From Bigelowiella natans CCMP2755 (Eukaryota > Protista > Cercozoa), in NCBI GenBank assembly GCA_000320545.1, contig ADNK01000489.1:184999-248998 (forward strand): a stretch of 64,000 bases of DNA, written 5' to 3'. Under the pieces are notes generated by a model. The model saw only the letters and a list, made by a program, of their open reading frames with translations, ran no database searches and was not told where the DNA came from. Shown piece after piece: positions 2,336 to 58,820 of this stretch. Position 1 is the first letter of the stretch, and every line of letters starts with the position of its first letter. Position numbers and translations under genes: made by a program.

Positions 2336-2374
<39 letters not shown>

Positions 2375-2380
<6 letters not shown>

Positions 2381-2515
2381 TGTCATGCTGCAATTGTGAC
2401 ATTCATGTGCCGATGATGATAAAAAAAAGTGTCCCATACACCCCCAGCCCCGCGCACACATTCATTTTGCCCCGTGAAGCCCCCCTATCACCCCCTCCAC
2501 ACATATACCCCAAAA

Positions 2516-2548
<33 letters not shown>

Positions 2549-2954: not shown

Positions 2955-2994
<40 letters not shown>

Positions 2995-3055
2995 GTAGCT
3001 CCTTAACTAGAACTCGACATGGATGTTCGACGCAGAAAATAGTTTCGACTGTTGT
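2375..3055 (+). repeat. Imperfect direct duplication of a ~230-bp unit (about 2375-2610 and 2823-3055)
   Basis: Both copies share gtgatgt(a)catgctgcaatt...atgtgccgatgatgataaaaaaagtgtcc...ttcattttgc.ccgtgaag...(CA)n-cagtgtagctcc.t.actagaact.gacatggatgttcgacg. Confidence 0.9.
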
Positions 3056-3629: not shown

Positions 3630-4330
3630 ACGGTGCGATGACATGTAGGTGCATGCAGATGGGCATTTCAGTCGGTGTGTGCAAGCAATTCATCTTGGTG
3701 CATGTGAACCTCAAGGGCTCCACGCTAGTCTAGCTAGTGCACGCACAGCGACAACCGGAATCTGTGTGAATTGCTCATTGTCATTGACATGTAGGAGATC
3801 AGATTTCTAGCACAAACTAGCAAAGTGCGAATGATGCCATGACAACGACTGAATGGTCAACTGCAATGATGTATACCACACCTCTGACAACGAATTGGCG
3901 AATTGCCTCGAGCAAGCCCAGCTGCCACTCACTGGCTTGGCTATTTTGCGATGCAACAATAATGTAGGATTCACGAGCTGCTGCCAGCCAGCTTACTAGC
4001 TTAAGTCTGAATATCATATAGTTGCCGCTGCTGAGAGCCAGTAAGCAACAAACTTGCACTACACGTTTCAGTGCGTGTGGCAAGAGACTTTGACTGTCAT
4101 TGATTACTTGCGCGCGCAGATGCCCAGTCTCTGCAGCTCAAGTGTCATGCCGCACAGGTACGTGCGTTTACTTCGCGTAGTAGACGATGCGTTGAAAATG
4201 TCTCTTTTGTCCAATGGTCATGCCAGCGACAGGCCTGCTAGCCTGGCTAGCTGGCGAGCTGTGTGTAGACTGGTGCTCTAGCTCACAGCAAGCGCCTTCT
4301 GTGGAACCAATAAGCTTTTGTCGCTACATC
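3630..4330. other. Convergent-junction RY-palindrome tract T1
   Basis: Dense acatgt, tgcatgca, gctagtctagctagtgcac, gcgcgc, gctagc, ctagct. Lies between a + unit ending ~3584 and a - unit ending ~4330-4390. Confidence 0.7.
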
Positions 4331-5184
4331 TAACAATGAAGTCTGTGCTTGTGGTTTACCGTAGCAAACCCAGCATCACAGTCTATCATATGAACGACAT
4401 GCAAACGCGCAGCTTGAAAATGATGGAAGGCTTGTTCATGTCTAGATGTTGCCTCGAAGTTCGTTACGCAGTCATCGGAGAACAAAGATTTCAAAAGTAG
4501 ACCCGGGAATGAAAGTTCGCAGAACCATCTCCAGTCTGGTGCGCGACAACGTAGGAACCTATTATTCATGTGATACAATAGATGCTGATTCTTGTCGATG
4601 AATAGATCATCGAAAATGTGTTATTCATCCGCTACGTACCGTAATTCCTGTCATAATGTCGCCGACCATCAAGCCATTGTTGCAATGTGCAACTGCTCCA
4701 GGCTCGTCTACACTGCGCCTTGTGTCCAAATTGTAAGCATCCACAACATCTCCCTTCTCCTTGACCTCCAAAATCTTTAGGGGCCCATAACGAAGCTTAT
4801 CTGTTCGCACACCCAATTCTGCGTTCTCGTCAGTAACAACGACCTTTAAAACCTTTTTCCCGTGCCTTATTATGTCCAAAAGTACTGGCATGCATGATAG
4901 CGCTCGTAAAGCTGATAAGAATTGTCCAAGTCCGTTGATAGAAAAACTAACTCCAATCACAATGTCGTTGCGTTGCAGTTCTAAATCTTCAATCCGTGGA
5001 TGATAATGAGGAGTACCGCGCTCCAAAACAGCGGTATCATGCTCTTGACAGTACATCTGGTGGGGATCCCGCACAAGATGCTCAGCATATATTGAGCTGC
5101 TATGGACGACTTGACCGTCCGCTACACTCATGTTAGGTTCCACATCTGAAAGCCCATCATCATGACTTTCCTTTCCGTCCATCG

Positions 5185-15719: not shown

Positions 15720-15935
15720 TTTTACGTTGCATGTTGTAGCTTAAAAAGGAAGCGTGCACATATATTGATAGCAGGCATAGACATGAGGTGGATGTAATGA
15801 AATGATTACATTCTTTCAATTTTCATCCTAATATTCGGCAGTGCAAAGTTGCGACTACATATATATGTGTATGCGAAGCTCAGACGAATGCGGGTGCCAT
15901 ACACTAGACTCGATCACGTCCATACACATAGAGCA

Positions 15936-15979
<44 letters not shown>

Positions 15980-16620
15980 AATATATGTATCAATGGACGC
16001 TACGTCACATGCTATCTATGTAGGTAGCCCTATATATTCCACTATATATGAGACGGATGTAATAAAATTGCCAAATGTTTTAAATTTTTTCAATGGTGAT
16101 CCTAATGTAGCTATGCAGAGCAGCGACTACAGCGCTTATATATATATGAGACGGATGTAATGAAGAATTAAATTTTTTCAATGGTCATCCTGATGTAGCT
16201 GTGCAATGCAGCGGCTACAGCGCTAATGTTACATCTGTTGGTTTCTGCCACCACGTGCTTCATGCATTTGAAAGCGTCCTCATGCGACCGATGTTGCTGC
16301 GCACTGCGCGCAGCAGTTCTGGAGTCCTTTTCAGCCTTTGTCAGCTTATATATATGTATATATATATATGTATATACATGCATGTGAAATATACCACATG
16401 CACATACACGCACAGAGAGGATGAAAACGAATAAACACAACAGAAGCACTGTAGCCGCCGCTCACTGCATAGCTACATTGAGATGACTAATGAAAAGATG
16501 TAATCATTTCATTACATCCATCTCACATGTCATGATCCTGAATGGTTGATGCTATATATATGAGCAAGCCCGAGCAAATTTATAGTAGCGCGCGGGCGAC
16601 AAACATGGCAAATAACCCTC
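15720..16620. other. Convergent-junction RY-palindrome tract T3 (contains 4 copies of the dyad element)
   Basis: tgcatgttgtagct, gtgcacat, gcatgcat, gcactgcgcgc, acatgcatgt, gcgcgcg. Lies between ACL5-like (+) and the 16925-17843 gene (-). Confidence 0.75.
15781..16530. repeat. Cluster of a ~65-90 bp dispersed element: three direct copies (15781-15845, 16046-16135, 16144-16224) and one inverted copy (16446-16530)
   Basis: Consensus ~ atatGAGACGGATGTAATGAA..(AT-rich)..TTCAATGGTCATCCTAATGTAGCTATGCA...GCGGCTACAGCGC. Segment 16446-16530 reverse-complements to it. Confidence 0.9.
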
Positions 16621-16924
16621 GGCAAATACGCAATAGAACTTATTCCATCTATTGGGTTGCAGTAGTTAAAATAGAGAAACCAAAGTGTGTCGTCATTGTA
16701 TCTAATCAACGTTGAACGTATGTGCGGCAGCCCAAGACGAGGAATGCTAGCAAAAGTCATGTACAACCAGCAAACATGGTCATTGAAGATATGCCTACGT
16801 TTATTGGTTCGCTGTGAATGCAACTGAACTTAGACGTTTGTCTACGCGATGCAGTGATTGAAAAGCTTGAATCTGCAAAATACATATTTCGCGGAGTCAA
16901 AAACGTATTTCGAAAATCTCGATA

Positions 16925-17843
16925 CTAATTTTCAAACCCTACCTTCAAATCTTTGCCCCTTGCAGCTACTAACTGGGAGCGCGGGCAAACAGATTCATGA
17001 GAATTCATTGACAATGCGGCCTCTTGCATGTGAGAAAACATCTCAATTTTAGATTGGAGGTCATTACTCCCTAGCTTTTTTTGTAGCTTTGAAAGAATAG
17101 AAAGCTCCGCCTGCCTGCGGTACTTCGACACACGAGCACGCAATATCTCTCGCACCTAAACATAAAGTTAAATCCTTAAGAACGATAGATCTCTTCAGTC
17201 AGCTTTTTACCACCTGCCTAGAAGTTACGGAGCCAGAAGAAGAATTGTGGGTTGGCGCTAAAGATTTTCCTCTGACAGTTTCTTTCATTCTCGCGGATTT
17301 GATTCCAGTTTTTCCTAGGAGCCACAGGTCTGATGATGCCGGAGAAGCAAGAGAAACGGTGGACTGGCTTGATGAGCTCGCAAACGACGAAGGGGATCCT
17401 TGACTCGCCACTACTTGTTTTCTCCCTTGATCCCAAGATGGACTTATATCACTTCGACGGTCTCCAGTCCTGTTGTTGCTTCTAACCCTCTCCAGCTTAG
17501 GAAGAGAAGAGTCGAGAACTCTGCTACAGATTGTTTTCGTGACGGGGTTTCTGGGAGGAGTCACAAATAATTCGGCTCTGGGATCTTGTGAAGTAGTAGG
17601 ACGCACCATTCTAGTATGGCAAATACGATTTCTTCGACTCTATAGTGATAATTATTACTCTTTAGAAACGACACCGAGGAGTAGTAACAATAAATGCTAC
17701 GCTAAATTCCAGACCTTCTTCTTCTTCGGCAGGGACTTAAGAGCGGCATCTCGTTTCCTCTTCTCCCTCTTAGTCGTGGGAAGTTTCACTGGAGCAGGCT
17801 CATGCGCTGCTGCAGCTTGACACAGGATGAGTAAAGATTCCAT
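16925..17843 (-). CDS. Hypothetical basic Ser-rich protein with NLS-like motif (3 exons)
   Basis: MESLLILCQAAAAHEPAPVKLPTTKREKRKRDAALKSLPKKKK|SRRNRICHTRMVRPTTSQDP...|VREILRARVSKYRRQAELSILSKLQKK...FEN*. In-frame GT-AG joins. Confidence 0.6.
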
Positions 17844-18238
17844 GCTAAGACAAAACTGTTTCAGTACAATGAAATCACTTCATTACACTTCGTACCCATC
17901 GCTTATCAACTGATCAAACCCCCGCACCCCCTCTCAATTTTCATCCATTTTCGTTTCCCCCTTCCTTCTTCGACTTGCCTAAACCTCTTCTGGAAAGGCA
18001 CTGTCGGAGGTCATCGAATTCCATTCATATGTCTACCTTGGAGTGAGGACAGGAGGGGTGCAGCGAGGGTGGCTGTGCTGAATAATTGGGAGCAGTATCC
18101 GTCCCAAAAACGCCATTTCAGTCTAAATATCTCAGTTGTGAGTCGATTTCAAGCTAAAAACCATTGCAATGACGATTTTCCCAGAAATCAAGTGCGATGA
18201 AGTATTACCCATCAGCTCTTTTAAAAAAAATCGCGGCA

Positions 18239-19171
18239 ATGAGCCTGACTACCTCAAAAGATAAAAGATCTCAAAAGATCTCTGGATATTTCAGGCGGAT
18301 TGCGAACGTGGAATTCCACCTAATTTCATCCGCTACTTTCGTAACAATCCGGAGATTCCGGGATTCGCACAGGAAGGCCCGGCGGGATTTTTCTCCTTGG
18401 TGTCCCCTCTCGTGCGGGCAGGTCGTACTGCATCCTGTACCAAACCAAAATGCTCCAGCAAAACAGATCAAGGAAAAATTCGATTAACAATTAATAAAGC
18501 GCGGCAGACTCCAAAATCGAGTACGTGTTATTCCAGGAAAAAAATGATCATGTGTAACGCGCAAGAAGAGGGTCCAATCCTCAGATAACGAGGGGCCAAC
18601 AAAAACATTCCTGTGAAAAAAGACACATACTTGTTGTCGCAAGAGAGGGATGCCCTAGAATTTCCTAACATTTTGTGATTCCTTAAAAAATACCAACATC
18701 GATTACTGCCCAACATCACCGGCAGCAAGTGTTTTCGCCAGGGGGTGGGGGGTGAGCAAAACTGAAAGCATCATTTACTGGTGTATCCAGGTGTTTACTC
18801 CGTTGACAAGCTTTAAGGTTTCCACGAGAGAGAGGCAAACAAATATGGAGATCGTGACTGCGTCACATCTGGAGGACGAGAAGCTATTAGAGCTAGTTGA
18901 GCTGTACACGCAAATTGATAGTCTAAATACTAGAAATAGACGCACCACCCTGCGAAGATTCTTCAAGAAGTTGAAGATAGGGTCCCATAGCTGCTTAGGA
19001 AGAACATTATGGAGGTGTTTCAGAAAACATTCCAGCAGAGAACGGGTTTGTTATGTTTAAGAGTAACGTTATTTACAGATGCCTATCGTCTGCATTACTG
19101 AGTCAGATTTGTTTTCATACAGCTACAAGAAAGAATGGCAAATTTTATTGCATGCGTCTCGTATACAGTTA
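18239..19171 (+). CDS. Putative orphan gene
   Basis: Exon-like ORFs with + strand splice sites (e.g. ccag|VFTPLTSFK...RKHSSRER|gtttg; ttacag|CLSSALLSQ...). No recognisable domain. Confidence 0.35.
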
Positions 19172-19599
19172 AGGATGGATCAAGAAATAACAGTTGCACC
19201 TATGGTAGAATAAATTGATAAATTTTCTTGTCGTCCTCTCGCATCTTTTGCATTTTTATCCAATACTATGCAATATCGGACCTACTACCTATTCCTCAAA
19301 CTCGCGACGATCAAGTAAATTTTTGCCTTCGTAAGATACAGTGTGGACGTTAATTAGGGCATCTCTAATCTACAGTTATATATCCTAGTAGCATCCTAAG
19401 TAAGAGGTATCGTTGTCGCTCCTATGCGGTCGTTTGCTGACAGAATTGTAATTTAGCTGGATCTGTCTGTAGCATCAAAATCACATGTCGCTAAATCGCA
19501 CATTTGCGGAAGAAATTTTAATTTAGAATCTTTTAATAGAAATGGTAGATCAAAAGTATTTTCAAAATTGATAATTTGTTCCCTTCTGCACATCTAGTC

Positions 19600-20250
19600 G
19601 CAAAGTTAGTTAAGCCATGATGAGATGAAAGCACAGCATCCCAGCAAGCATTCACGCATTGGTGTATGCACTGCACACTTGCGGGATCAATCACCAGCTA
19701 CAGATGGGATGCAGCAGGCATGCTGGTCGCATCGGGGTGACGTTGTCACTGCTGTAGACTTTTGCCTGTCGTGCTAGCATGGCACGTCGCAATTGCAGCT
19801 TGGGTTACAGATTGACCTAGCTAGCTAGTGACATCACAACACAACACGTATAAATGATTGTGTGCTAGCTCTAGAGCTGTCATCACACCATCACAGTCAT
19901 ATGTCGGATGCGACATGCACGCCAGCCAGATCGAATGGACACTATCAAGACGCTTCCCATACTAGCATAGCTAGACAGCGTGCACGCGCTAGCGCGATGC
20001 CTGTGGTCGACGCTGAGAAAACAGCGCAGCAACCTGTGGCCTGTGTGGTGTCATGGCGTGCGATGCGGCCATGATGTGAGAACAGAGCTAGCCGCAAAGA
20101 GTCACAGAAAAGCAAAAGAATCAAATTGCAAGCATGCGCTGCTCTAGTGCTGACATGGTGCACTCTAGCACTGTGCACTACATCTAGGTCCAAACTTTCA
20201 AACATTCATGCATGCTAGCATGCGAAGCAAAGCTGGGATTTGCAATGTGA
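19600..20250. other. Convergent-junction RY-palindrome tract T4
   Basis: tatgcactgcac, gcatgc, gtgctagcatg, ctagctagctag, gctagctctagagct, cgtgcacgcgctagcgcg, catgcatgctagcatgc. Directly 3' of the vWA gene (-) and of the 18.2-19.2 kb unit (+). Confidence 0.8.
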
Positions 20251-20384
20251 CGGGAGGTGTTGCTCGAGACTTTCAATCTTGACATTCAAAATGAAACATG
20301 CAAGAGGACATGGAGAAAGAAGGGCGACTGAGCGTACGGATCGGCGACGGGATGGCTAGATGGGATCATTCGCAAAGAGCACCA

Positions 20385-21365
20385 TCAATGTATGGAATTG
20401 AAACGATCCATGTCTGTGAATCTAGGAGCTAAACTGGGAGCAGCTGTTCGCATCTTCATGACCCTTGATGTTGCTTGGATGGCAAGACTGCAACTGTCTC
20501 TGCACGGTGCAAATGTCATCGAAGTGTGCTCCTCGAAACCGTATCCTTTTCCAGTTGCTATGGCATCTTGATTCGCTCCTAGGAAGAATGCTGTGAAATC
20601 CTCTTCCTTGCGAGCCTTTTCAAGCTCGCTCTTGAGAGTTTCAGCGTTCTTCACGGACATGTTGTCCTCTCCGTCTGTGAGTAGCATGAAATTCTGGACA
20701 ATCTTTCCAGAGGGCTTCTCATCTTGCATCTCTTCTAAGCCCTTCAAATGTGATTTGACATTGGATTTCAGATGTCCTAACCGTTCAAAGGCTGTATCGA
20801 TTAGCCTGGTCAGTCCTCTTGGCTTGAGCCAATGTTTCAACTCCTTGTACGTTGGCAAGCGGGCTTTCAAAATATCAACATTCTCTAACCGTATCTCGGC
20901 CTCATTATCGAAAGTAGTCAATGAAACGAAGGTTGGAACTTTTGTCTCTTCTGCTGTTTTCTTTTGCTCGACCAGGAGATTGAATATCTGCTCCACGGTG
21001 CCAGATCCCATAGCGGACATTGAGCCTGACCGGTCGATCACGATCTCTACGAAAGTTGCTATTGGTGACTCAGCATTCGATGTAGTTTGCTTCGATGAGG
21101 AAGCTGCTCTGGTCGTCGCCGGAGATTTTCCGGTTTCAGGGAGCTGGACCCATTCATTTTCTTCGACAGCCAGACCTCTCTTCGAAGTCATTCCCTCTCG
21201 AGGTTGCTCACGTATGTGGACTTCATCGTTCCTTTTAACTGCTTTGATGTGTTCCTGTCGTGTTGATGACATGTCTGCGTTCGGGTTGTGGTGGTCTGTG
21301 TTCGGGTTGCGGTGGTCTACGGGGTTATGGTGGATAATAGACGTTGCGTTTCTCATCCCATTCAC
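20385..21365 (-). CDS. von Willebrand factor type A (vWA) domain protein, single exon
   Basis: 326-aa uninterrupted ORF with MIDAS motifs IVIDRSGSM, T of GLTRLID, LLTDGEDN, and C-terminal FFLGANQDAIATGKGYG typical of standalone bacterial/giant-virus vWA proteins. First ATG is MRNATS near 21356. Confidence 0.9.
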   Translation of the reverse strand: MNGMRNATSIIHHNPVDHRNPNTDHHNPNADMSSTRQEHIKAVKRNDEVHIREQPREGMTSKRGLAVEENEWVQLPETGKSPATTRAASSSKQTTSNAESPIATFVEIVIDRSGSMSAMGSGTVEQIFNLLVEQKKTAEETKVPTFVSLTTFDNEAEIRLENVDILKARLPTYKELKHWLKPRGLTRLIDTAFERLGHLKSNVKSHLKGLEEMQDEKPSGKIVQNFMLLTDGEDNMSVKNAETLKSELEKARKEEDFTAFFLGANQDAIATGKGYGFEEHTSMTFAPCRDSCSLAIQATSRVMKMRTAAPSLAPRFTDMDRFNSIH

Positions 21366-21781
21366 CTTCGGCTTGAAGGGCTGGAGAAGAAATTATCTCG
21401 TCCTCGGCTTGAAAAAATAAGGTGAAACGGAGGCGATTTCCCCCTCTAAGTGGGTCTTATCTCATGTTCATCCATTTCTCGGGGCATCAGCATAACAGAA
21501 GAAATAAAGAAGAAGATAAGCGACGCACGTATGGATTATCTACAGATCTGGAGCCGATCTTTTATTTCCTTCTAAATTTCGGCCGCCAATTACTTCCATT
21601 GCCGCTGGGAGCAAATTCTGTCATTTCTATTTCAGACAAATAATTGATGTAGGAATATCGAATGGATCATGGGATATTGATCTCGTTTTGCATCTCGAAA
21701 CTACAACAACATTGGTAACCCATATTTATTAATATAATAAAAAATACGAAGTATTTGGGTTATAAAACTTTCTACTGGCCC

Positions 21782-23059
21782 ATGTCCATTATAAGAAGAG
21801 GTCCCAGTCTCCCGTTCCAAATCCCTCAGGAGGAACAAGGGAGGAGGAGGAGGAGGAGGAGGAGGACGAGGTGCCAGGGCTTAAGCGAGCATGGACATTC
21901 CGCTCTTTGGACATCATCCACTGTCCTCACCTGCACATAGTGCTGCCACAGCGTACACGAAAGCGTTCGGGAAATCAATTGTACTTGTGGCGTCTTCGTC
22001 ATCGTCGCCAGACCCACGGATTATTAACGCATTCATCCTCTCCTCAAACGTTAAGGTGGGTGGTGAATCGGATGTTGAACCTTGTCCTCATTGAAAAGAA
22101 CAGTTATATTTTTTACCTTTTCCCCTTCTCACCTCCCTCCCCCCCCCTCTCTCCCTCACTCTGGTCTAGACCACCAAGTTAACCCTCTCCGGAATCGTCG
22201 GAGTGAACCATGCGAGTGGGAAAAGGAACGGTATCTTCGTTTTTGGATTGAGACGTATATTGAGTGAATCAGTGATCGAATATGCAAATCAGAGATGCAT
22301 TTCCTTATCATCTGTCATTATCATACTCTTCCAACCTTCTATCATTATCATTATTATCATTATTATCATTATTGTTTTTGTTGTTGTGGGCAGTACCTGG
22401 TGTCCCCGCTCAAGCTTCCCAATCTCACCACCACCGTGGGAATCCAAACCCTAGCCTGAATGCTTCATCCACCTCAGTTTCACGAATCAAAGCGATCAAA
22501 TGCGTGCGTACCGGACCCTTTTGAAAGCAGACCTTTTTTATCATTCTGAAGATTGTACATATCCTCAGATCAATCTGGCGCACAACCATCCTTGCTTAGC
22601 TGTGCTCACTGTATACGATTTCCCTCTTGCATACCCCTCTAACGCTCATGCTTCTGAATCTTTGCCCCTTTATCGATATTATCTATGTGTACATACATAA
22701 TTATATTTACATATATATATATTTATATATATATTTATATCTTAGGTACCCACAGCACGACAGCATTTACATTCTCACTCAAATCAGCCCTCGAAGTCTT
22801 CTCCAACATCCCAGTCCCCGGCACTGCACATCTACGGCCTGCACTGTCCTCCGAATCATTTTGATAAACGTAATAAATCACTAATACTTATACTCACTAG
22901 CTACAATGTCTTCGAGTTCTTCAGTGTGAAATGAGCATCCTCGTGTTTCATTGAAAGGCAAGAGTAGCGGGAAAGGATGCACACCTCCGTATGACGTTGA
23001 GATTGTGGAGAAGTGGTTGAGCTCCTTGTGCAAGGACAAACTAACGGTTTAAACGTGAA

Positions 23060-23099
<40 letters not shown>

Positions 23100-23333
23100 A
23101 GAACAAAGAAGAAAGTGCTAGTCGACACGTGACATCGTGAGTGGTGAATGAAAAACTTTTCATAATGATTCAAATGAAGAAGATGGGGGAGAGAAGGAGA
23201 GGGAGGCAATGGGGGTGTTGGAGACGTAAATATACTGAATGTAAAACTTGCTTCAGATCCTATTTCTTATCACTCACACTCCTCTATTGTAACTCTATTG
23301 TTATCTTGACACACCTCTCCGTCCGTCCTATTA

Positions 23334-23383
<50 letters not shown>

Positions 23384-23726
23384 TCAGATTGAGTTGGGTT
23401 TCCGTCCTGTCTGTCTTGCTACGATGGCCCATTTTGACCTTTCTAACAAGGCAATGATGGAGCGCGTGTTCTCACCGATGAAGACCACGGGAAAATCAAC
23501 GACATTCAAATACAGCAAGGGCAGTAGCGGTAAACCTAATGAAGGATTTCCAGGGCTCGAGCAGAGCAGCGCACAATGTGATGTTGCTGCACGAAAAGCA
23601 AGTCGCTTATTATCAGCATCATCATCATCATCGTCACCATCATCAACATCACTCCCTTCGACGAGGGGCACAAAGGCTGATTCAAAGGGACTAAACGTCA
23701 CGAAAAGTGTTGCAGATAGAAAAGGA

Positions 23727-23757
<31 letters not shown>

Positions 23758-23853
23758 CCTCACAGGTCGTCGATTTCGTAGGAAAATTTCTTTGATACTC
23801 TTCCTCCCCATAGGATAAAACCGCTGACTGTCATACCCTCCCCCCTTTTATGG

Positions 23854-23884
<31 letters not shown>

Positions 23885-24807
23885 CAGTGCTACTATGGCC
23901 ACTTGACTGATGCTGCTGCTGCTGTGTATTTGATCACCAGCACTTACTAAATTGCCTATTATAAGAGATGGGTATAGGAAAACCATATCACTTAGTTTTT
24001 TAATAATTTTTGATGAAAGGCACCGGCGAATGGCACGGACAACTTTGGAATGGGAGGGAATATGAGCAACTATTTATCGAATATTTATCCCAAGGAGGTG
24101 GTAGTAATCGGAAGCAAGAGGCGCCGCTTTCATGTGTTTGAGATTTCTCGACGATCCTCAACGATGCAGCCAACCACTCACGATAGAGGTGGTGCTGAGA
24201 ATGGTGGCAATGGTGATGATGATGATCATGGTTATCATCATCATAGTGCCGCCACAGGAAGCGTAGCTGGGAAAACGGCAACCGCCCAGCCTGCATTGTC
24301 GTCGCCATCCTCATCAGCTTCAAAAAGGCCCTCTTCCGATGGCACCATAGTTCAAAGCCAACCAAACAGCGGCAAGAGAAGCAGCAGCAGCAGCAGCCTG
24401 AAGAGTGAGGAGAAGAATCATCATGGGAATAATAATAATAATAACCGTGTCTCTAGAATCGGTCATGAGAAGTCAACGACAATGGCCATTACTACATCAC
24501 TTTCGTCCAAGAATACGGCAGATTCTTCCACTGCTTTTTCTCCCCCATCATCTTACCACCATTCTGACGAGAAAGTAGGAGTAGCACACACCGCTACTCC
24601 TCGCCATGAATCAACTCTTGCTGCTGATTGTGCTCTCCCTTCCGGAAGAGAAGGACGGGGAAGATTCGAGGGAGATAAAGGTGATTAGTATCAAAGAGAA
24701 AAACATGGATTTGCGTATCATCTTTCGTCCTGTGCATCTTGGTCAGACTTTCTTCTCAAAGCGAATACCATTTCCTATGCGTTGGTGATGTTTTCTCATC
24801 ATCGTCG

Positions 24808-24845
<38 letters not shown>

Positions 24846-25058
24846 CAGCGGATGATATATCAACTGAAAGAGGGCAGGGAGACCAAAAGCAAAGCAGAAG
24901 GGAGAAACATCATCAACACACGAAGAGTCTCAAACCGCAATGGCAAATAAAAGAGGTCGTTCCCCGAGATCCAAGGTATTGTTAAATGCATGATCGCGGC
25001 GGCGATCACCGCCGCACCACCACACCGCCACCACGCCGTCTTGATAACGTAAACATCG

Positions 25059-25096
<38 letters not shown>

Positions 25097-25231
25097 TACT
25101 ACTTACTACCTATTGCTTCTTCTTCTAATTTACTCTACAGGTACCCTTTGGTAGAGTTGTCGCGGTTGGCAGCGGCACCTATGTGTTTTGAAGCTAAGTG
25201 CTTCCGACGTGAAGGGTGAGAATAGATTGAA

Positions 25232-25269
<38 letters not shown>

Positions 25270-27113
25270 AAATGATAGTTGTGTTGCTGCTGCTGGTGGT
25301 GGTGGTGGTGGTGGTGGTGATTATAAATGGTGATGATGATGATGTTTGAGGAGGACGATGATTGACAGAGATTATGCTGGTGAATGATGGTATGCTAGGG
25401 AACCGCGACTGGTTAGAGTAGTTGCTGCAGGGTGTGAGGATGGTAATATGTAATGTGCTGGGGATAGAGGATGGCACATGTCAAGCAGCCGACTATTATA
25501 AGTTTCATCCTTTATGTGATATAGATGACGATGACGACGGTGACGGTGACGGTGATGATGATGATGTTGTTGATGATGATAGTGATGATAACACGGCAAC
25601 CGTGGCACTAGCAATGTCGTTGTTGCTCCATAACCACCACCACCACCACCACCACCACTACCTTAGTTTAAAACCAGCAGCAACACTCCTCATCATCATC
25701 ATCATCAACAACAACAACAACAACAACTACAACAAAAACAACAACATTATAGGAAGCATCCGCATGCAAATCTCCACCTTCGACCACAAACATTCTTCGC
25801 AGCAGCAGCAGCAGCAGCAGCGTGACAACAAGAGGAAGAAGAAGAACAAGACGGGTTCTGCTGGTCATACTCAGAACAGGACTCGTGAGCATGAGTTGGA
25901 GCAGGAAGAAGACAAGGAGGAAGAGGCGACATCAACAACAATCATGAAACGTGTGGATGATGCTGATGATCATGATGATGGTGATGATGATGATCACAAC
26001 AGTCCACCACTGGAGCAAGAAGAGGAAGAAGAAAAAGATAAAGAAAAAAATGAAAAAGAAAGCCGTACACCACCACCACCACCAGCAGCAGCAGTAGCAG
26101 CAGAGATCACGAAGAAGACCAAGCCAAGACTGAAGAAGACGCACGTATCACTCCGCTCAAGGCAGTACACCATATACAGTATATTGCTTTCTCTCTCTCT
26201 CTCTCTCTTCTCTTCTCTTCTCATATATATTTCTTCTCGAATATGTGACTCTAGCTTTCCTTATTCTTCTTCTTCTTCCATTGTTAGTGCCGAGAGTGTT
26301 GGACTGGCAGATGCTCCAATATCCTTCATCCATATTTTCTCCGACACAACATCTCAGTATGACCACTACCGTCAAAAACGGTATCTCCGTGTTGAAAGAG
26401 AATAATAATCGCCAAATATGTAATAATGTGCGCTCGTTCTTGATGCCCCTCCGTAATCCTCCTCCCTTTTCTTCTCTTCACTACACTGATGATGAGGATT
26501 CTTACTTGTTGACCGTTGGTGCAATCCGTTTTCTTCCAGCAGTTGTTTGTAGTAGTAGTAGTGGTAGTAGTAGTAGTAGTAGTGGTGGTAGCAGTGGTAG
26601 CAGCAGCAGCAGTATTATTATTATTATTATTAGTAGTAGTAGTAGTGAGAATATGTGCGTTGGTGGGTGCATCTATCTCAGGAGGACGGAGTGTCATGCT
26701 CAAATGATGAAGTTCTTGACGCCGCTGGAAGAACTGGCTGCTGCGACTGCTAGCTCTTCCTCTTCCTCCTTCTCCTCTCCTTCTTCTTCCAACTCTTTTC
26801 CACCTCCTCACAAAAGGCACACACATTCGTCTCTCCCTTATCCTCATTCTCACACAACGACGGCCAATCACACGGGTATGATGATGATGTGTTTTTTGCG
26901 AGCGCAAATACTCTGCTGCTGGTGGTAGCTGCGAAGATATGTATAATTTTCGAGCCTCGCTCCTGTACAACGACATTTTAAAAAGACGCTTTTCATGTTT
27001 ACTACTGCAACTACTACACTTAGATGGACGACTAGGAATCCACATACTCGGTTGTTCTAAAAACAGAATGTCGTATCTTAGCTACACTTTCCCCCCGCCC
27101 TCCCCCTCCCCCC

Positions 27114-27161
<48 letters not shown>

Positions 27162-27671
27162 CGCTCTCTATGTGCGTGCGTGTGTGTGTGTGTGTGTTTG
27201 TATAATGGCTCGCGCTCTCGCTGCCATCATGTTGTTGTTGTTGTTGTTCTTCTTCTTCTTCTTCTTCTCCCACACTGATGAGGTTTGCGGCATATAATTG
27301 CTAATTATTTAGTCGGAAGCTCCCTTGGATATGCTGTTGTTTTCTCGGTATAAATAAATAATGGAATGGCTGTGAGAAAGAAGGAACCCTCGTCACTCTG
27401 AATCAATTCCGTTCATCCCATTCTTTTCCGTTTGTCACTTGGCTTTCCCGCCTTCGTACTCTATTTCCTTTGCTTCTCATTTTATTTCTTCTTCTTCTTC
27501 TTCTTCTTCTTCTTCTTCTTCTTGTCGTCGTCGATGAATACGTCGTAAGGATGTGGATTCGGTCGGTTTCAAAAAGCAGCATATTCTCCCATCATCCAAC
27601 GAGGTTAGATCCTCCGCTGTATAGTTGCAAAAGTGGTATATATGTTAGATAATATAGGAGGGCAATGGATG

Positions 27672-27707
<36 letters not shown>

Positions 27708-28602
27708 ATATATTTTTTCGTATGTGTGAAACGGCTATTCCAGATAGGAAATTTGGCATAATAATATATTCGAATAAATGCCACCTGGCGAGACGTTTGA
27801 CCTGGCGCTGTTTCGTAGGACAAAAGCATTATCAACGATTTCCTTAGGAACAATTAGTACACCTCTAATCATATATAACTATTTTCCTGGGCCACAATAA
27901 CAGTTCGACTCGGTACTTTGTGGGACCTCCGCCGATCTCGATTTGGATGGTAGAGGAGCACTTTCGCAAATGGCTTCCTTTTCTCGTATCTGTTGTCTAT
28001 TGCTTATATGGAGTGCCTCCAACATATTAAATGCCCCTCCCTTTACCCCCCCCCCCCCCCTCCCTCCTAACGCCACTCATCCATCGTTAATCATCGACAG
28101 GATATCATGAGCTGTTCATTGGTACATACTCCGGACAGCTTCTGTGTTACCGTAACTCAAACTCTATCGATGAAAAGAGGAGTGCTAGTTGCAATAGTAG
28201 TAGAGATACCGCTACTCAACCTCACGGATATCTGGGAGAGAAGACAAGCTACAAACTAGAATTTGTACGGCTCATTACCATTCAGTACCTCGACATCCTA
28301 CGTACCCACATGTAATCTGGAATGCTTAGGTTCAGCGGCTACGTCATCCTGTGCAAAACGCGCGCACATTCCGTGTTGAAGGTTTTGAGAGCCAGCCTGG
28401 TATTCATTTTCTGTCCATCGTCTTCAAATTTCTCTTGAACAGATATTTCTACTTTTTATCAGCATTATTGAGCACCACTTCAACCTGGGCATTAAATTTT
28501 CTTCGTCCGAAAAAAGAACGTGTCGTACCAAATGCGAGGCGCTTGATACATCTCCTTGCAGACATAGCACGTCTGAAGAAAGAATTGATGAATCAATCAT
28601 AA
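21782..28602 (+). CDS. Large multi-exon hypothetical protein with low-complexity middle region (probably one gene)
   Basis: Chain of + strand exon-like blocks between microsatellite-rich introns (23394-23765, 24050-24680, YPLVELSRLAAAPMCFEAKCFRREG, GVRMVICNVLGIEDGTCQAADYYKFHP, ERVGLADAPISFIHIFSDT, RTECHAQMMKFLTPLEEL, last exon ...ARLKKELMNQS*). No family recognised. Some joins are unresolved. Confidence 0.5.
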
Positions 28603-28619
28603 ACTTGGTAGCTTTGTTT

Positions 28620-29420
28620 TGCATTCCAGAGCGAGCTGCTAGGTAATTAAAAGTATATGATGAATAATGCAACCACGCTACATATGCACCCAATAAATGT
28701 TGTCCATCACATAATGGACTGCATGCATCGCAGCAATGTCGCGCATGCGCTACCCACATGCTGCATGTTGCTGAGCTTTGTCAAATAAAGACCAAACGTA
28801 ACATGCTGCAGCAAAGCAGCTGTCAAGCTAGCAAGCTATAACGCTTCGCGCGCTACGCACAGTGCAGATGAACGTGTATTAGTTAAGAGCAAATGCATTG
28901 TATATGTTACATATATGTCTGGCCCTAACATGCACCGCGTCGTTTGTACATGTGCAATGCATGTGTGCACAGCAACATTAGGATGACCATTGAAAGATTC
29001 AATCAATTCACTACTTCCGTCTCATATGTGTATGTAGCACTGCATGCAGACAGTTCGATCCACATTAGGATGGCAATTTGGAACGATTTAATCACTTCAT
29101 TACTTCGTCTCACATGCTAGCATGGAGATGGTGCCCTCGCTCTGATGCACGCCACAGCAAGCTAATTTTCGAGACGGCTATAGTCGTCTCTCGCCCGGTG
29201 AGGAAGTTACAGACATACATTACCCAGCAATTAGCTAGTTAGCCCATGTAGCGCACATAACCATTGAGTTGCAGAATTTACAAACACAGTGCATCCTGCG
29301 ATGACACAAATATGCATGTATGAGTGTGCAAGTGTAAATATGTATCACTGGATGGCAGCACGATCACTATATTTCCTACTGTACATGGCTCTCGGAGCAT
29401 GCAGTTGTTGAACAGGTCTA
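28620..29420. other. Convergent-junction RY-palindrome tract T5 (contains 2 copies of the dyad element)
   Basis: tgcatgcatcgc, gcgcatgcgc, acatgctgcatg, agctagc, gtacatgtgcaatgcatgtgtgcac, ttagctagttagc. Confidence 0.8.
28965..29117 (-). repeat. Two tandem copies of the dyad element (28965-29030, 29060-29117)
   Basis: gcacagcaacattaggatgaccattgaaagattcaatcaattcactacttccgtctcatat and cacattaggatggcaatttggaacgatttaatcacttcattacttcgtctcacat are the reverse complement of the 16 kb consensus. Confidence 0.85.
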
Positions 29421-29457
29421 AATCTCGTCAAGCACAGATATTTTTGGGACACTGGCA

Positions 29458-30600
29458 TTAGAACTTGAGCGCAGTTAACATGGCAGCATAACGAAGGACT
29501 GGCTTCGAGAAGGAGCTCTCCAATATACTTGCTTTACTGCGAGAGATAACTCGTGGCCTTTTTGGGTTGGTAATATTTGTTGTGTTTTTTCTTAAGACAA
29601 AAGAATGTATTATAAAAAGGGTTCACCTTATCATAAGTATCTACTGTAGGAGTGATTTCGGCCTCAAGTGTGGAACGCTCGTCTTTCAGAGATGACACTC
29701 TTTCAGCTAATTCTTTTGTCTCCTCTTCAAGCTACAGAGGAGTATAAAACCACTTAGTGCCGCATGCAAAACGTGATATAGTTGAAATTAAAATCAAAAA
29801 CCGATAGCAGAGGTCGTACCTGCGATAATTTCTCTGTCAGAGCTGCGTGCTGTGCCCGTGCAATGGAGGCCTCAAAAATTTTTAAGGATTGTTCCGCAGA
29901 CCTGGAATGGAGAAATGACACACAGTCAGGCTCACTCATTCACCAAATTGTGTGAAGTGGATAAACATAGTAGCTAACACGTATACTCATGAATCAATTC
30001 TGAAATGGTCTACATCTTGTTTCCCCCTGTTCCACTCTTTTCTTCATAGATTGATCGTGCGGATTCCAGTTCGACCTTTCAATGGTAGCAACAAAACATG
30101 CCTTAGTTTCCTCAATATGACTACCTGAAGTTATCTGATGAGTAAGAAATTTTGTCGCTCTTCCTCAACGTTTTGCCCTATGGAATCCATTTTTACCCAC
30201 CTTCAGATTCTCTTTCATTGCCTCTACCGTAGTCTTCAACGACGCCTCGATAGCCTTATTTGCATTCTTCTTCAACGGGGTGTCAGCCAATACAGGTAAA
30301 GAAGTGTCAGTGTTCATAGGTTTGAGAGCATCATCTAGGCGACGGATGTATGCAGATTGAACGGTCTCCCAAAGATGAGAGGAGCCCTCTGCCGCCATGT
30401 TTACAATCTGTCGCTTGATGTGTTTGGAGTCGTCCTGTTAGGGAAAAGTAGGTCATTTCTTCATATTTTTATTGTCGCAGGATTCAATTAGAAGGTAATT
30501 TGAGCCAAAACCTCCGGAACATCTTGGCGGGTTTTTTGAGGTGGTCAGACAGGCTGGAAGCACCCCCAGACGATGCTGGCTGACATCTAGGACTGCGAAA
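29458..30600 (-). CDS. Hypothetical coiled-coil protein (multi-exon)
   Basis: Exons DDSKHIKRQIVNMAAEGSSHLWETVQSAYIRRLDDALK...AMKENLK; SAEQSLKIFEASIARAQHAALTEKLSQ; LEEETKELAERVSSLKDERSTLEAEI; ...LRYAAMLTALKF*. Start not resolved. Confidence 0.6.
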
Positions 30601-30856
30601 ACATCCGTAAAAATATTGTCTAAACTCGACGAACGGGCTCGGCCTCCTTTGCAATCGTAGCTGTCTTCTCAATAAAGCACGATTTGGATAATATTTTTAG
30701 CCGGGAATATCCTCAGGCTTCTCTTTCGTAGCGAGAATGAGTATGCTGTAAGGCAGCAATCAATAGGGATCAACACGAAAAGGGGCACCACCCCTCTGTC
30801 CATTATTGGAACGCTCCCAACAGATAATCGAATCCTGAGGATTTTCCCCACTTCCA

Positions 30857-31855
30857 ATGCCTAGTTCAAATCCTGCTGCGCGCAGTTTGGAAGCCAGAGA
30901 TGCTCTTGAAGACGGCATGTCTGGGGAACAGGATATGGCGATTGAAGACATAGAAAAGGAAATGAATAAGTTCCATCGTGACAATAATCACGACCACAAT
31001 GGGATGCTCTCCAATGGAGAAACCAATAAGAACGAACAAACTTCTAAAGCGGAGGAGGTTTCCATGCGCGCCAAAAAGCCGGTAGGTGGCGGGTTGACGC
31101 AAGGAGGATTCAGAGACGAGACTAGAATCGAAAGCTCATGTTGCGCATCACTGATGTTGTTTTGCTGTTTAGAAATATGGAAGGGCAAAGGATGATAATC
31201 CAGACGTTATCACGATGGACGATTTTAACCAACAAGTCATCAAGGAGAAGAACTTGCCTCAGGTCCGTGTTGAACTTTCACCCGAGATGGGGTTAAAACT
31301 ATCAGTCAGAGCAAACGAAAGTGGTAATTCTTAGTTAATATGAATATTTAACCTCATGGTCCTTACTTAATCAATTCAGGACAAGTTTGACAAAGAGAAA
31401 GACTGGGATGCTAAAATAGAAATATATTATCAACGGAAAGAGGTGTGTATATCCAAAGATGTGGTGTAGGAGGTCTCTAACACTAGAAAATTACTTTCGA
31501 AGTCACGAGATGCACACCGAAGGGCCGAGTTGAGAGAGAGAGCTTGGAAGAGACGGAAAGCTGCAATGAGATACGTTTTCACTGGCCAGGTAGTGTAGAG
31601 ATATGCCCTCTTAAGGAAATTACCCGATCGAAGTGTGCAATTCTTTACAGTGGATGAACTTCAGCGCAAAGTGTAAAGACAACTGCAAGTGTTGTGGGAA
31701 GTAAGAACTAATCGTTTGAAAGAATGTAATGCTTACTAATGACTACCGGCATTCTTCTCAGGTCGACGACAACTATCATATGCATCATCATAGTCGTCGC
31801 GGTGGTTGTAGGGACACCCATAGTCATCACAGTTTTCACAGGTGGCTTAGCATGA
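30857..31855 (+). CDS. Tail-anchored membrane protein of unknown function
   Basis: Acidic N-terminus MPSSNPAARSLEARDALEDG..., basic coiled segment RRAELRERAWKRRK, Cys cluster CKDNCKCCGK, then a single C-terminal hydrophobic helix IICIIIVVAVVVGTPIVITVF GGLA*. Confidence 0.7.
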
Positions 31856-31919
31856 ACATTTGTGGAAAAGTTATAAGTGATACTATCATTACAAGTGCAT
31901 CTTCACTGTTACTTGTCCA

Positions 31920-32400
31920 TTTTTTGCGCACGCGCACATAACATGGCTTGCATTGTGCCTGCTGCTGGCGTGCGCTGTAACGCCGCAGCTTGTTCGATGA
32001 CTTCATGCGTACGCTATATGTAAGTGTGTAGCTAGCGGAGCTTGCCACAATCGCATCTCTATTGCTCAGTAGTGATACGCTAGATACGGCTAGCGCATAC
32101 GCAAGGTGATTATCAAGCATCACTGGTGTGCTTATTGCGCACAAATTGACAAGTCACATAGTGATGACAATACAAAGTCGATGCGGGACGAACGCCGGTC
32201 ACAGATTAGTGTCATGTGTAGTACAGGATGCCACATATGAAAGCACAGCTACATGAGGATGACCATTGAACAAATTTAATTTGATTGATTACATCCGTCT
32301 TACATACGAAAGAGCGAGCAATCACGCACGCTACCACATATTTGGCACAGAAAAATGATTAGGGCGACTCTACTAAAAGGTTCGCGCAGGTGCAATGGAC
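31920..32400. other. Convergent-junction RY-palindrome tract T6 (contains 1 copy of the dyad element)
   Basis: tgcgcacgcgcac, tgcattgtgc, gtagctagcgg, gctagcgcat, tgcgcac, catgtgtagtac. Element copy at 32242-32307. Confidence 0.8.
32242..32307 (-). repeat. Single copy of the dyad element
   Basis: gcacagctacatgaggatgaccattgaacaaatttaatttgattgattacatccgtcttacat matches the reverse complement of 16144-16205. Confidence 0.85.
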
Positions 32401-32511: not shown

Positions 32512-33743
32512 TCAAATTTTCAATGTCGGATTGTTCCAAGTAGATTCTCCAGTGGCAGAGTTCCACCAATATGGCCTACCTGTATCATCATCGAAATGCC
32601 GAGTCCAGGCAGCAGCTAGTTCGCCACCCCTGGCACTGGCAGGAGTTTGAGCTTGATTCGATGTGTGAGTAGCTCCAAGGTTAGCATTGGAGGAAGAGTT
32701 CCTGACAACAGTTGTGTCTCCCACAGTTATTCCACCAGGGGTCGATATTCCTGCAGGTGTATTTGGAACAGAAGAAGTGCCGGCAGCAGCTGCTTCTTTC
32801 TGCATACCTTTGATTTCAAATTGCTTGCTTCGAATCTTCATCTCGATACTGCTTTTTCGCGTCTAGAATGAAGCACAACATCACCATGGTTCAATGAGAT
32901 AACGCTAACGGGGCTTGAGGTCTGTACACTGCATCTGACTGGAAAATCACGCCTTCCATAGCCGTAAAAGAAACAAAAAGGTGGGCATAAGTAAGAGTAC
33001 GATATATACCTCCCATCCATCTCTATGTTGTCCAAAACAACGCCATGCGCCCCAGCTAATCAAACCCAGAACAACCACTCCAACAACCACTATGCCAATG
33101 AGCATTGGCAAATTGTTGTCATCACTGTCATTTTCTGATGCCGACGGTGAGTTGGGAATATTCGATGTTACAACTAAATTTACCCCCAGCTCTTGCGAAA
33201 GCTATTGTTTGTTATGAGAAACACAACAGAAAATAAGATTCAAATGTGTGTGCAGATATTTTGCGCATACGATAAACATACTTATAACATACGTGGATAA
33301 ATTGAATAACAAAGCGTCATCAAAATCATTTGCATATTGTATCTACAAAAGAACCTGCTCGGAACCAATAGATACAAGTTCTGCGGCAATTGTAGTAGGC
33401 GTTCTTCCATTACTCGGGGATGTAAAAATGACCGTTGCCACCACTGACCCCGCTCTATATCTGTTCAATTCGTCAGATTTGTGATTATGAGAATGTTTGC
33501 CAATTGGACACGGTTGAATCTCTCTTGTACACACATGAGAAATTATGTGAAATATGTTCGCGTTTTCATGGTTGTGTATATGGACATCAAATGTGATTGC
33601 ACATACGTTATCTCAATGGCAGTTGTCGGGACTCCAACAAGGCGGCCAATTACGGACTTTGTATTGTTCCGAAATTCTGCGTCCACCTACAAAAATAGAC
33701 ATACAAATATTGAACTCCCGATGTAAAGGTTTACTAGCAAATA

Positions 33744-33777
<34 letters not shown>

Positions 33778-35318
33778 CTATATATGCATTGTACATAGTT
33801 TCTCTCTCCTTAAACTATGTCGGAATGGGTGCAGTCCCTTGTAATGTTGTGTGATCTCACAAACTCCAATATGTCATAACTTAATGGCATTAGAAATATG
33901 AGGGAGTTATTGTATCCGACAGAGGCTAATGTCATCCCGCTTATCCTGAGGTATACTTCAGGCCGGGAAGTTGGACTTGTGGTAGGCGATAATTGGCTTG
34001 GGCATGTCGTTGGGTTGGCGCCCTCAACAGTAGGTTGCGTCGTAGAAGGACCGTATGTATATCCTTCAGCAGTTGGGTGTGCAGAGGTAGGAGTATAAGT
34101 GGGTCTTGTGGATGTGGGGTTGTACGTAGCACCTTCAACGCTGGGCTGCGTAGTCGAAGGGGTGCCAGTAGGAGGGGGAGGGGCAGCAAGTACCGGATTT
34201 TGCGTAGAGGGGACAGTGGTCGGGTGTGCCGTGGTAGGGGGCCCAACAACAGGAGATCCTGTGGGCCCAAACCCCGGAAGGTAATTAACATTATCGATGG
34301 GTTCTGTTGTGATGTAGTCGGTGTTCTCGATAATCTCCGTGGTGGCTTGAGCGGTTGTTAATCCGGGGCATTCTGCCTGGTCTGCAGAATAATGAGGGTT
34401 TGTACACTGGTCCATGATACTCTGGAGTTGGTATTGATCCCATCCAAAGAAGTAGTCTGCGTGAATGTATTGCGTGCCGTCGGAGAAAACGTGCTGTCCT
34501 CCAGGATAGTTGTTCAAACGATAGAATATTCTGATTCGTGGGATAGGGACCGGATGACTTGCAGGGCATGTACCCATCCCATTTTCTGGAATTTCATTGT
34601 TCGTAGGATATGCCACGTGGCTGCGGTGATCTGGGCTATCAAGGTTCACGCCGTCCCAACACTCAGGCATGATGAGTGTGATCTCCAGTTCGCTACAAAC
34701 TTGTGTCGGGAGCAGTCCAGTACCACAGCCTGCACCCATAATTTCTTGTTTCGTCGGGTATATTGCAGGATCTCCCCCCGCGATCATCTACAAAATTATT
34801 AAAATTAAAGAGAAGGCGATGCTAAATGTACCTAAAAACATCTGTATTCTTTCCCTCTCGCATTCCCCCATTTCTCATCAAACACACGTTTTTCTAGTTT
34901 CTTATGTTCCGAAATGAAATACCCTGAAACCATTGGGAAACGATCTCGTGACCCCGGTCTCCCAGTTATAGTATGCGGTATGAGTAAAGTCCCGATGTAG
35001 AATATACTGCCCATTTACAACCCTGTAGACTGAGGGCGCCCAATATAAACTTTTGTTCTCGACCCACTCACAAGATGTTCGCGTGGCATTTCGCAAATCT
35101 GCCCAAGTTGTGCTCGGTGCTACTTGATTGGAGCCAAAAAATGTGTGTACGTGCGGCCCAAGCCCGTTGGGGTTGACGATTGGATCTGTTCTGACAAACG
35201 CTGTGGTGGAGCAGTCATTCCGCATCGTGGTGGATTCGGATTCACTCATGAAAAGAAGCAATATCTGGAAAAAGAGTGCTGATGCCATACTAGGGAAGGG
35301 GAGAGGCAGTGCTTCCAT
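32512..35318 (-). CDS. Type-I membrane protein: signal peptide + DUF1996 + P/T-rich stalk + SEA-like module + TM + cytoplasmic WW domain
   Basis: DUF1996 motifs RTDPIVNP...HVHTFFGSN, NKSLYWAPS, FPNGFR|MIAG, PECWDGVNLDSPDHRSHVAYP, CPASHPVPIP, HADYFFGWD. PT repeats follow, then RAGSVVATVIF (SEA-like GSVV), TM LIGIVVVGVVVLGLISWGAW, and WW domain AWTRHFDDDTGRPYWWNSATGESTWNNP*. Confidence 0.88.
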
Positions 35319-35869
35319 TCTTGGATAGAAGGGATAGTCTATATCTACAAAGATTGAGATAAGTCAACGATCACCAGGCCAGGTTGGCTGCGTCGTTTGC
35401 AAACGAATTCGGTGTTTAGACGTTACAAGATTCGTAGAATCGCTCAGACGCAGGGATGCAAAGCTAAGAAAAAAAGGCATTCGGTTGCATTTCTGCGACA
35501 ACTTCGTCAACGATTCTTCATGTGGATGGCATGGGAAAACTTGGGCTGCGTCAATGATTTCGCAGCATGTCGCAGCATGAAAATGCACAATGGTCAAATA
35601 TGTTCATGTCATGCACACGCGTGCCATTATTGTCGATCTCCACGTTTCGAACAGTAACGCTCTTTCTCTTAAATTAGATCTAATCACATGGGGATGATCG
35701 TTCCTCCTGCATCGCTCAGGACCGCTTCATCACTCAAACCATCTTGACCGAGATTGATCACCTCAAAACATTGCAAAATCAGTAGCCGGAGGTGTGTGGA
35801 CAAAGATCATTTTCTTGCTTGGGAGAAGTCAAAGCTAGAAAGGCGTCATCCAGAAAAAATGCGTGAGCG

Positions 35870-36410
35870 AAGTCGCCAAGCATGTGCAGGAAGGTCGTTC
35901 TCGCAATCGCGACAGCGGGTGCATGATCATGTGCAGCATGCACATGCTAGCATGCGCGCGTGACAGTGATTGTTGTTGATGGTGAGCAATTGTCATGGCG
36001 GTGCGCATCGCATGGTCACGATCATGTCTAGCTAGCTATGTCACGTTGTAGCTAGCCACGTCATTGTTGCTGTTGCGAATGATCGAATCAAATTTTCCGG
36101 CCGGCCACCGCTAGCTCGCGCATGTTGCATGATGGACACAGTAATTCCATATGCACACTGCATGCACACAGCATCATTACGCGGTGTCTATCATTTGCTA
36201 TTATTAGCTAGAGGCCGCCCGAGCAAAGTTTTGATGATCGTCCGTCGATCATACATATGCATCATGTGCCATGCGAGATTTAGGCTGTGCGTTCGTAGTG
36301 ATTGCACTCCTCACAAATGTTTTGCGATGCTTAGGCAGTCATGCTGTGCGCGCGGCTGCATGCTGACATTCTACCCAGCGTATCATCCAATGTCACGCAT
36401 AGCTCGCTCA
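35870..36410. other. Convergent-junction RY-palindrome tract T7
   Basis: gtgcatgatcatgtgcagcatgcacatgctagcatgcgcgcg, ctagctagcta, gctagctcgcgcatgttgcatg, tgcatgcac. Immediately 3' of the LRR gene (-). Confidence 0.8.
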
Positions 36411-36528
36411 GTAAAGACGTTTATTTTTCACGAATTTTGAGGATTCAGCATCGTAACGCTAAGCAAACGACAGTGTCCCCGCTATCTCAACATGAATTTA
36501 GATCGAAATGGGTGTTGTTTGCTCATCA

Positions 36529-58760: not shown

Positions 58761-58820
58761 GTGTTACCTCATTGACATTAAGTTTAAAATGGGGGATCAT
58801 TTTAATTTATTGGTTGACGC

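Follow-up and report, generated by a model that had tools for sequence, protein, structure and literature searches.

The seven short repeats found at three loci in a stretch of 64,000 nucleotides of the Bigelowiella natans CCMP2755 genome (contig ADNK01000489.1, positions 184,999 to 248,998; called the window below) are the 5'-truncated tails of a retrotransposon without long terminal repeats (a non-LTR retrotransposon), that is, of a long interspersed nuclear element (LINE). They are not a free-standing dyad element, as had been proposed in a preliminary description of the window, which reported a dyad-symmetric unit of ~65-90 bp restricted to the junctions of convergent genes. The explanation that we hold with high confidence is that the repeat is the constant 3' end of a LINE family, that its short copies, or stubs, are left by target-primed reverse transcription, and that the dyad is best taken as a feature of the RNA. 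The window is eukaryotic in character (44% G+C, TA microsatellites, scarce long open frames) and belongs to an assembly of 91.4 Mb in 3,736 contigs. The seven copies do exist, at the positions first assigned to them or a few bases away and with the relative orientations described, and alignments bore out their consensus of two conserved halves separated by a drifting spacer. Allowing up to 3 mismatches, the right half-site (24 bases) matched the window 4 times compared to 0.00 expected; the left half-site (12 bases), with 2 mismatches at most, matched 16 times, all seven true copies included, compared to 7.6 expected.

The nature of the repeat became apparent from its copies elsewhere in the genome. 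A 93-base query around copy 3 returned 1,592 first-look candidates genome-wide, of which 40 were scored and were 98-100% identical; a 17-base word of the tail, with at most one mismatch, was present 1,427 times (713 and 714 times on the two strands) whereas the reversed control was present 0 times. When matches were aligned with their flanks, one end was constant and read …CATCCGTCTCA, often followed by TA repeats; on the strand used in the preliminary description this end reads TGAGACGGATG…, usually with TA ahead of it. The opposite end was variable: at 29 loci the homology extended over anything between 90 and more than 1,132 bases, and the lengths of copies sharing the one 3' end formed a continuum from 51 to 4,959 bases. 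Beyond the limit of homology, a short copy of the sequence ahead of the constant end often recurred. Copies that share a constant 3' end, are truncated at random on the 5' side and are flanked by target-site duplications bear the signature of a non-LTR retrotransposon, here seen on the reverse strand. The unit first described is therefore longer than supposed and open-ended on one side: its copies are real, its independence is not.

At least 11 full-length copies (loci L034-L048, for example L046:150-5108) share a common 5' end, are ~99.8% identical and have both open reading frames (ORF1 and ORF2) intact. Three were read end to end, one of which measures 4,959 bases. The full element starts with AAACGG… and terminates with …GTCTCA, and the full-length copies showed neither long terminal repeats nor inverted ones. 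ORF1 extends over up to 480 codons and contains a coiled-coil-like region; no Pfam family matched it. ORF2 overlaps ORF1, is 1,164 codons long and carries a Cys/His motif close to its C-terminus. In L046 it matches the Pfam families RVT_1 at 7.2e-18 (above the cut-off) and Exo_endo_phos_2 at 9.6e-18, and the older copy L031 has a frame of 1,183 codons with both reverse-transcriptase and endonuclease domains. The best solved relatives of ORF2 are the reverse transcriptase of human L1 ORF2p (2e-7) and the TRAS1 endonuclease (5e-3); the closest named database proteins are ~26% identical, and a word search gave only two close relatives. Judged by its predicted reverse transcriptase and N-terminal endonuclease, its 3'-constant and 5'-truncated copies and its variable target-site duplications, the element qualifies as a LINE of the apurinic-endonuclease type. 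The near identity of its full-length copies suggests a young family, which is probably still active. A literature search found no account of non-LTR elements of this species.

Several individual copies and relatives of the element deserve mention. At L045 a new copy directly adjoins an older, inverted tail stub. L047 (G000:C908:86800-92300) has a full-length 5' end, and the canonical 3' word was not found within the expected 5 kb; this copy may be interrupted or rearranged. A contig of 5,001 bases from an ocean assembly (L071) is filled by a complete related element whose ORF2 is 76% identical in the reverse-transcriptase region and whose tail is identical to that of one subfamily of this genome (L008). 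A more distant relative, found in assemblies of public sequencing runs (L069/L070), has an insertion of ~155 residues that separates the reverse transcriptase from the C-terminal zinc motif and includes a TDGS-like stretch; no RNase H was called by Pfam in these extra residues (protein P0002).

The copies of the window were placed with nhmmer, using a profile hidden Markov model (HMM) built from 53 tails, and with blastn and tblastn, using the full element and its proteins (Table 1). The profile scan recovered all seven copies, and searches with the full element and its proteins revealed 3'-terminal pieces only. The copies thus correspond to the last 53-199 bases of the LINE, of which the reverse strand had been read. 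Copy 3 codes for the final 59 residues of ORF2 (tblastn, residues 1106-1164, 91.5% identity) and continues into a 3' untranslated region (3'UTR) of 21 bases, and copy 2 codes for the final 19 residues (tblastn, residues 1146-1164, 89% identity). Copies 1 and 4-7 are stubs of 53-115 bases that stem from older or different subfamilies. Copy 1 terminates with …CATCCACCTCA. A genome-wide query with copy 7 gave 931 first-look candidates, the 40 scored being 89-98% identical, and other members of its subfamily reach 5' to differing lengths and carry target-site duplications. Copies 2 and 3 form a tandem pair because copy 3 inserted into the TA-rich flank adjoining copy 2.

Table 1. Retrotransposon stubs and associated target-site duplications in the window.
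Feature	Position	Strand	Description
Copy 1	15784..15848	-	3'-terminal stub (~65 bases) from a diverged LINE subfamily; nhmmer E 1.9e-15
Copy 2	16049..16139	-	~91-base stub with ~10 extra loop bases; nhmmer E 1.3e-15
Copy 3 target-site duplication, 3' side	16134..16145	.	12 bases, TA-repeat-like, in the TA-rich flank beside copy 2
Copy 3	16147..16345	-	199-base stub; blastn to 4763-4959 of 4959, 94.9%
Copy 3 target-site duplication, 5' side	16344..16355	.	same 12-mer, perfect
Copy 4	16411..16525	+	~115-base stub in the opposite orientation; nhmmer/blastn
Copy 5	28958..29024	+	~65-base stub, old and decayed; nhmmer/blastn
Copy 6	29060..29112	+	~53-base stub, old and decayed; nhmmer E 1.2e-11 (second run 6.5e-9)
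Copy 7	32243..32304	+	62-base stub of subfamily B, terminates …GTCTTA-CA
Possible eighth stub	4183..4222	-	heavily decayed, marginal (nhmmer E 0.017); outside the alternating islands

Target-site duplications, which the preliminary description had listed among the features to look for, flank the copies. They were unambiguous for 21 copies, measured 9-14 bases (median 12) and began directly after …GTCTCA. Alignment of the 21 corresponding empty sites gave the consensus YA|YATAT, with A at position -1 in 18 sites, Y at +1 in 19, A at +2 in 18, T at +3 in 16, A at +4 in 15 and T at +5 in 15. Among 60 tails ending with …TCTCA, the next bases were TA in 38 and CA in 15, compared to a background of 6-7% for each dinucleotide; in subfamily B the tail ends with …GTCTTA, and CA comes next in 15 of the 18 copies. 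Several copies carry long TA runs after the tail, and the related complete element on the ocean contig is followed by (TA)21. Much of the TA found after tails belongs to the target duplication. The simplest reading of these junctions is that a nicked, TA-repeat-like target would anneal to a short UA or YA tail of the RNA. After many tails CATG, CATA or TGTT stands in place of TATA (window positions 16525-16530 and 29112-29118; the 3' junctions of L045, L046 and L048), a pattern that could result either from hypermutation of TA to CA or TG or from a real difference between targets.

A further tandem arrangement was observed at L006:1208-1586, where two stubs, one of 121 and one of 284 bases, both have an identical 13-base target duplication after them; they result either from two hits on one site or from unequal exchange. 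An insertion apparently restores a TA-repeat-like target that can be used again, which would account for the clusters of tandem and back-to-back stubs such as that at 15784-16525 in the window.

We then consider the dyad itself. In the RNA, the order along the tail is GGAUG…UGAA, a loop, UUCA…CAUCC and then GUCUCA; the paired segments, GGAUG/CAUCC and UGAA/UUCA, are arranged around an internal loop. The inverted halves of the preliminary description are thus present, but with 5+4 base pairs the dyad symmetry is weak. The 5' arm consists of the last codons of ORF2 (…I-R-M-T-I-E-K-I), the loop contains the stop codon of ORF2, and the 3' arm together with GUCUCA lies in the 3'UTR of about 21 bases. 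Aligned tails of four subfamilies with differing loops have the stop codon at the same position, and what had been called an AT-rich spacer is therefore the stop codon and the first bases of the 3'UTR. The spacing between the halves, whose constancy had been put forward as the mark of a protein site, varies and is longest in copy 2 (~10 extra spacer bases); such variation suits a rigid dimeric DNA site poorly but is acceptable for an RNA hairpin. All six tails that were folded showed the same two-stem architecture. In copy 1 the stop codon in the loop is TAA; in copy 4 the outer stem is shifted (GAGAUG/CAUCUC) and the inner stem comprises 8 base pairs (-14 kcal/mol, z -2.5).

The distant relative L069/L070 provides a further view of this structure. 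Its ORF2 shows 55% identity in the reverse-transcriptase region and 44% across the first 930 residues of the alignment, and ends in a related peptide, the C-terminal peptide being conserved. The two-stem hairpin is also the predicted fold of its tail, again with the stop codon inside the loop, and its outer stem GGAGCA/UGCUCC replaces GGAUG/CAUCC. In an alignment of 11 sequences, three pairs were changed on both sides with pairing kept, a number reached in 0 of 500 shuffles. The dyad is better understood as a feature of the RNA than as a DNA site, and comparison with characterized LINEs suggests that it is probably a hairpin recognised by the reverse transcriptase of the element itself, the ORF2 protein.

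The location of the copies was then analyzed. All three loci of the window lie within islands of alternating purines and pyrimidines, which span 21% of the window, and the claim that the copies occupy a special class of intergenic tract holds in this form. There are 18 such islands in the window, 15 of them without a copy. To extend the analysis, ~65 other loci were taken from the rest of the genome by tail similarity alone, giving 142 flanks. The median alternation of these flanks was 0.61 compared to 0.49 in background tiles, and 73% of the flanks exceeded the 90th percentile of the background (Mann-Whitney p 1e-36). The flanks of the youngest full-length copies are equally alternating (0.57-0.72 against the background median), which favours insertion preference over slow purging. 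In the window, the target motif is ~2.8-fold enriched in the islands, which hold 58% of the sites in 21% of the sequence. Combined, these observations suggest that insertion preference is partly responsible for the location bias, stubs accumulating in the alternating spacers in part because the preferred TA-repeat-like targets are there.

The convergent setting of the junctions was supported for one flank out of six only. A gene whose product combines a DUF1996 domain (1e-20) with a WW domain at the C-terminus (2e-10) lies at 32515-35363 on the - strand, and its 3' end is ~210 bases from copy 7. It was the only one named in a Pfam scan of 20 open frames around the three loci. A self-trained strand caller based on codon usage was too weak on short exons, and the orientation of the other five flanks was not obtained. 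Long open frames overlap on opposite strands at 20385-21420, 26245-27045 and 59188-59994, so that open frames by themselves are no reliable guide to the coding strand in this genome. The islands measure 0.4-1.5 kb each (for example 2109-3279, 19565-20196, 35820-36465 and 58347-59854), and several have little TA and much CA and TG, the island at 19565-20196 having 14 CTAG; this composition agrees with the spacer class and the TA-erasing mutation of a 2026 preprint.

These results can be assembled into a mechanism. The endonuclease would nick a TA-repeat-like site of consensus YA|YATAT, and the freed DNA end would prime synthesis of complementary DNA on the 3' end of the RNA (…CAUCCGUCUCA, probably followed by UA repeats). 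Synthesis would usually abort early, leaving stubs of 50-200 bases flanked by target duplications of 9-14 bases. By analogy with LINEs of the stringent type, the ORF2 protein would recognise the hairpin of the tail before priming.

Parallels exist in known elements, among which the tails of stringent-type LINEs come closest. The tail of the eel element UnaL2 has a stem interrupted by an internal loop and, after it, a UGUAA repeat at which reverse transcription begins, with slippage on the template (PMC1636434), and the ORF2 protein of the zebrafish L2 element ZfL2 binds its cognate stem-loop (PMC4176376). The B. natans element would resemble both (PMC1636434, PMC4176376) in its predicted conserved 3'-terminal stem, likewise interrupted by an internal loop, with a putative short terminal repeat after it; in place of UGUAA it has the GUCUCA end and, in many copies, TA repeats. 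It differs from them in that the 3'UTR is only ~21 bases long, the 5' arm belongs to the coding part of ORF2 with the stop codon placed in the loop, in that the tail repeat is a dinucleotide and often absent, and in that binding by ORF2 is putative here. We saw no evidence that the element is a member of the L2 clade. As for L1, 5' truncation is massive, target duplications are variable and the first bases of the duplication match the tail of the element, which in both cases implies annealing between the nicked target and the RNA at its 3' end. Unlike L1, which has the weak consensus TT|AAAA with an A-rich target and tail, the element described here has a TA-repeat-like target; L1 ORF2p is its closest solved reverse transcriptase, only at the E value of 2e-7. 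The R1 and Tx1 groups include LINEs that target microsatellites and prefer simple-repeat-like sequence. The insertion sites observed here are likewise simple-repeat-like, and the best solved match of the endonuclease, TRAS1, belongs to the R1 group (E 0.005). In contrast to the microsatellite-targeting LINEs of the R1 and Tx1 groups, the consensus is loose rather than strictly site-specific, and many duplications contain unique sequence after their first 4-5 bases.

A number of observations weigh against parts of this explanation. The UA-repeat tail of the RNA is read from DNA only, and young full-length copies are devoid of a TA run. The z-scores of single-sequence folds ranged from +0.8 to -2.5, mostly no better than shuffles. 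RNAalifold returned no consensus structure for the 53 tails of this genome; pair counting on the same alignment found the named structure 92% paired with zero compensatory changes. The covariation sought as a sign of RNA structure is thus absent among the copies of this genome and present, with its three compensatory pairs, in the comparison with the distant relative. The copies within the genome are neutral on the hairpin, neither for it nor against it. All three compensatory changes come from one lineage and are accordingly supportive rather than conclusive, and coding constraint alone accounts for part of the conservation of the 5' arm. With respect to location, the distribution of the target motif accounts for part of the bias, though perhaps not for all, and purifying selection elsewhere is as simple a cause.

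The mobile nature of the copies had been foreseen in the preliminary description, which offered a tiny mobile element targeting the junctions as one possibility, and this came closest to the truth; the copies are mobile, but they are tails of a 4,959-base LINE rather than tiny elements built on a dyad. The description had also named a fragment of a Helitron or of a miniature inverted-repeat transposable element (MITE) as a finding that would undo its proposal. A transposon fragment is indeed what the unit is, and its class is LINE. As in Helitron 3' ends, there is a hairpin, here a predicted one, near a constant end and insertion occurs at an A|T step; Helitrons produce no target duplication and carry Rep/helicase genes, whereas here duplications of 9-14 bases are found together with an endonuclease and a reverse transcriptase, and the ends are AAACGG…/…GTCTCA instead of 5'-TC…CTRR-3'. 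The MITE class was rejected on the lack of terminal inverted repeats, uniform length and a duplication of fixed length. A non-autonomous short element, either such a MITE built on the inverted halves or a short interspersed nuclear element (SINE) with a LINE tail, would nevertheless agree with the predominance of very short copies (50-200 bases), with the frequent occurrence of SINE partners sharing the 3' tail of stringent LINEs (PMC1636434) and with the mutual inversion of the halves. We regard it as very unlikely, since lengths form a continuum in which homology always continues into the ORF2 coding sequence, a fixed 5' end and a tRNA-like head are both absent, the inverted halves are internal rather than terminal, and the duplications range over 9-14 bases where a cut-and-paste family would give a fixed length.

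The two other possibilities raised in the preliminary description assign the repeat a host function. The restriction of copies to a distinct class of spacer and the conservation of the two halves above that of the spacer would be expected of a host DNA site, original or exapted from LINE tails, at which a dimeric boundary or termination factor marks convergent junctions. This is highly improbable given the signature of retrotransposition in every copy examined, the variable half spacing, and the use of one half as ORF2 coding sequence. Furthermore, most alternating islands of the window have no copy, old copies such as copies 5 and 6 decay freely in both halves, and what the copies have in common is owed to the active master elements from which they descend, not to selection site by site. 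A small structured RNA gene dispersed in intergenic DNA, such as a hairpin RNA or one resembling a small nucleolar RNA, would be consistent with the hairpin predicted in all subfamilies. We give this interpretation almost no credence: a search of the whole window against Rfam 15 at the gathering score found no match and a tRNA scan found no genes, the 5' ends are variable, the aligned flanks showed no promoter-like constant upstream part, the folds of most copies are no more stable than shuffles, and the sequence, which runs on into ORF2, forms the end of a transcript that codes for protein.

A more elaborate version of the LINE explanation, which we consider rather unlikely, would make the element semi-site-specific, its endonuclease and priming step selecting TA-repeat-like targets that in this gene-dense alga are concentrated in untranscribed convergent spacers, which serve as a safe haven, and would give the hairpin a second role in coupling translation to RNA capture. 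If so, the safe haven would explain why even the youngest copies sit in the spacers of convergent genes, and the ribosome, in melting the hairpin that straddles the stop codon, would release the ORF2 protein where the hairpin refolds, providing a built-in cis-preference.

Returning to the explanation by truncated LINE tails, the family is an ordinary LINE, of a kind already known. To this the analysis adds the anatomy with the stop codon in the loop, the covariation with a distant relative, and the quantified target consensus as a putative partial cause of the location bias. The apparent boundary or termination motif at convergent junctions is transposon debris, and annotators and studies of these spacers should mask it first. 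A stop codon placed inside a putative recognition hairpin, together with a 3'UTR of 21 bases, would offer a compact system for the question of how a LINE protein finds its own RNA.

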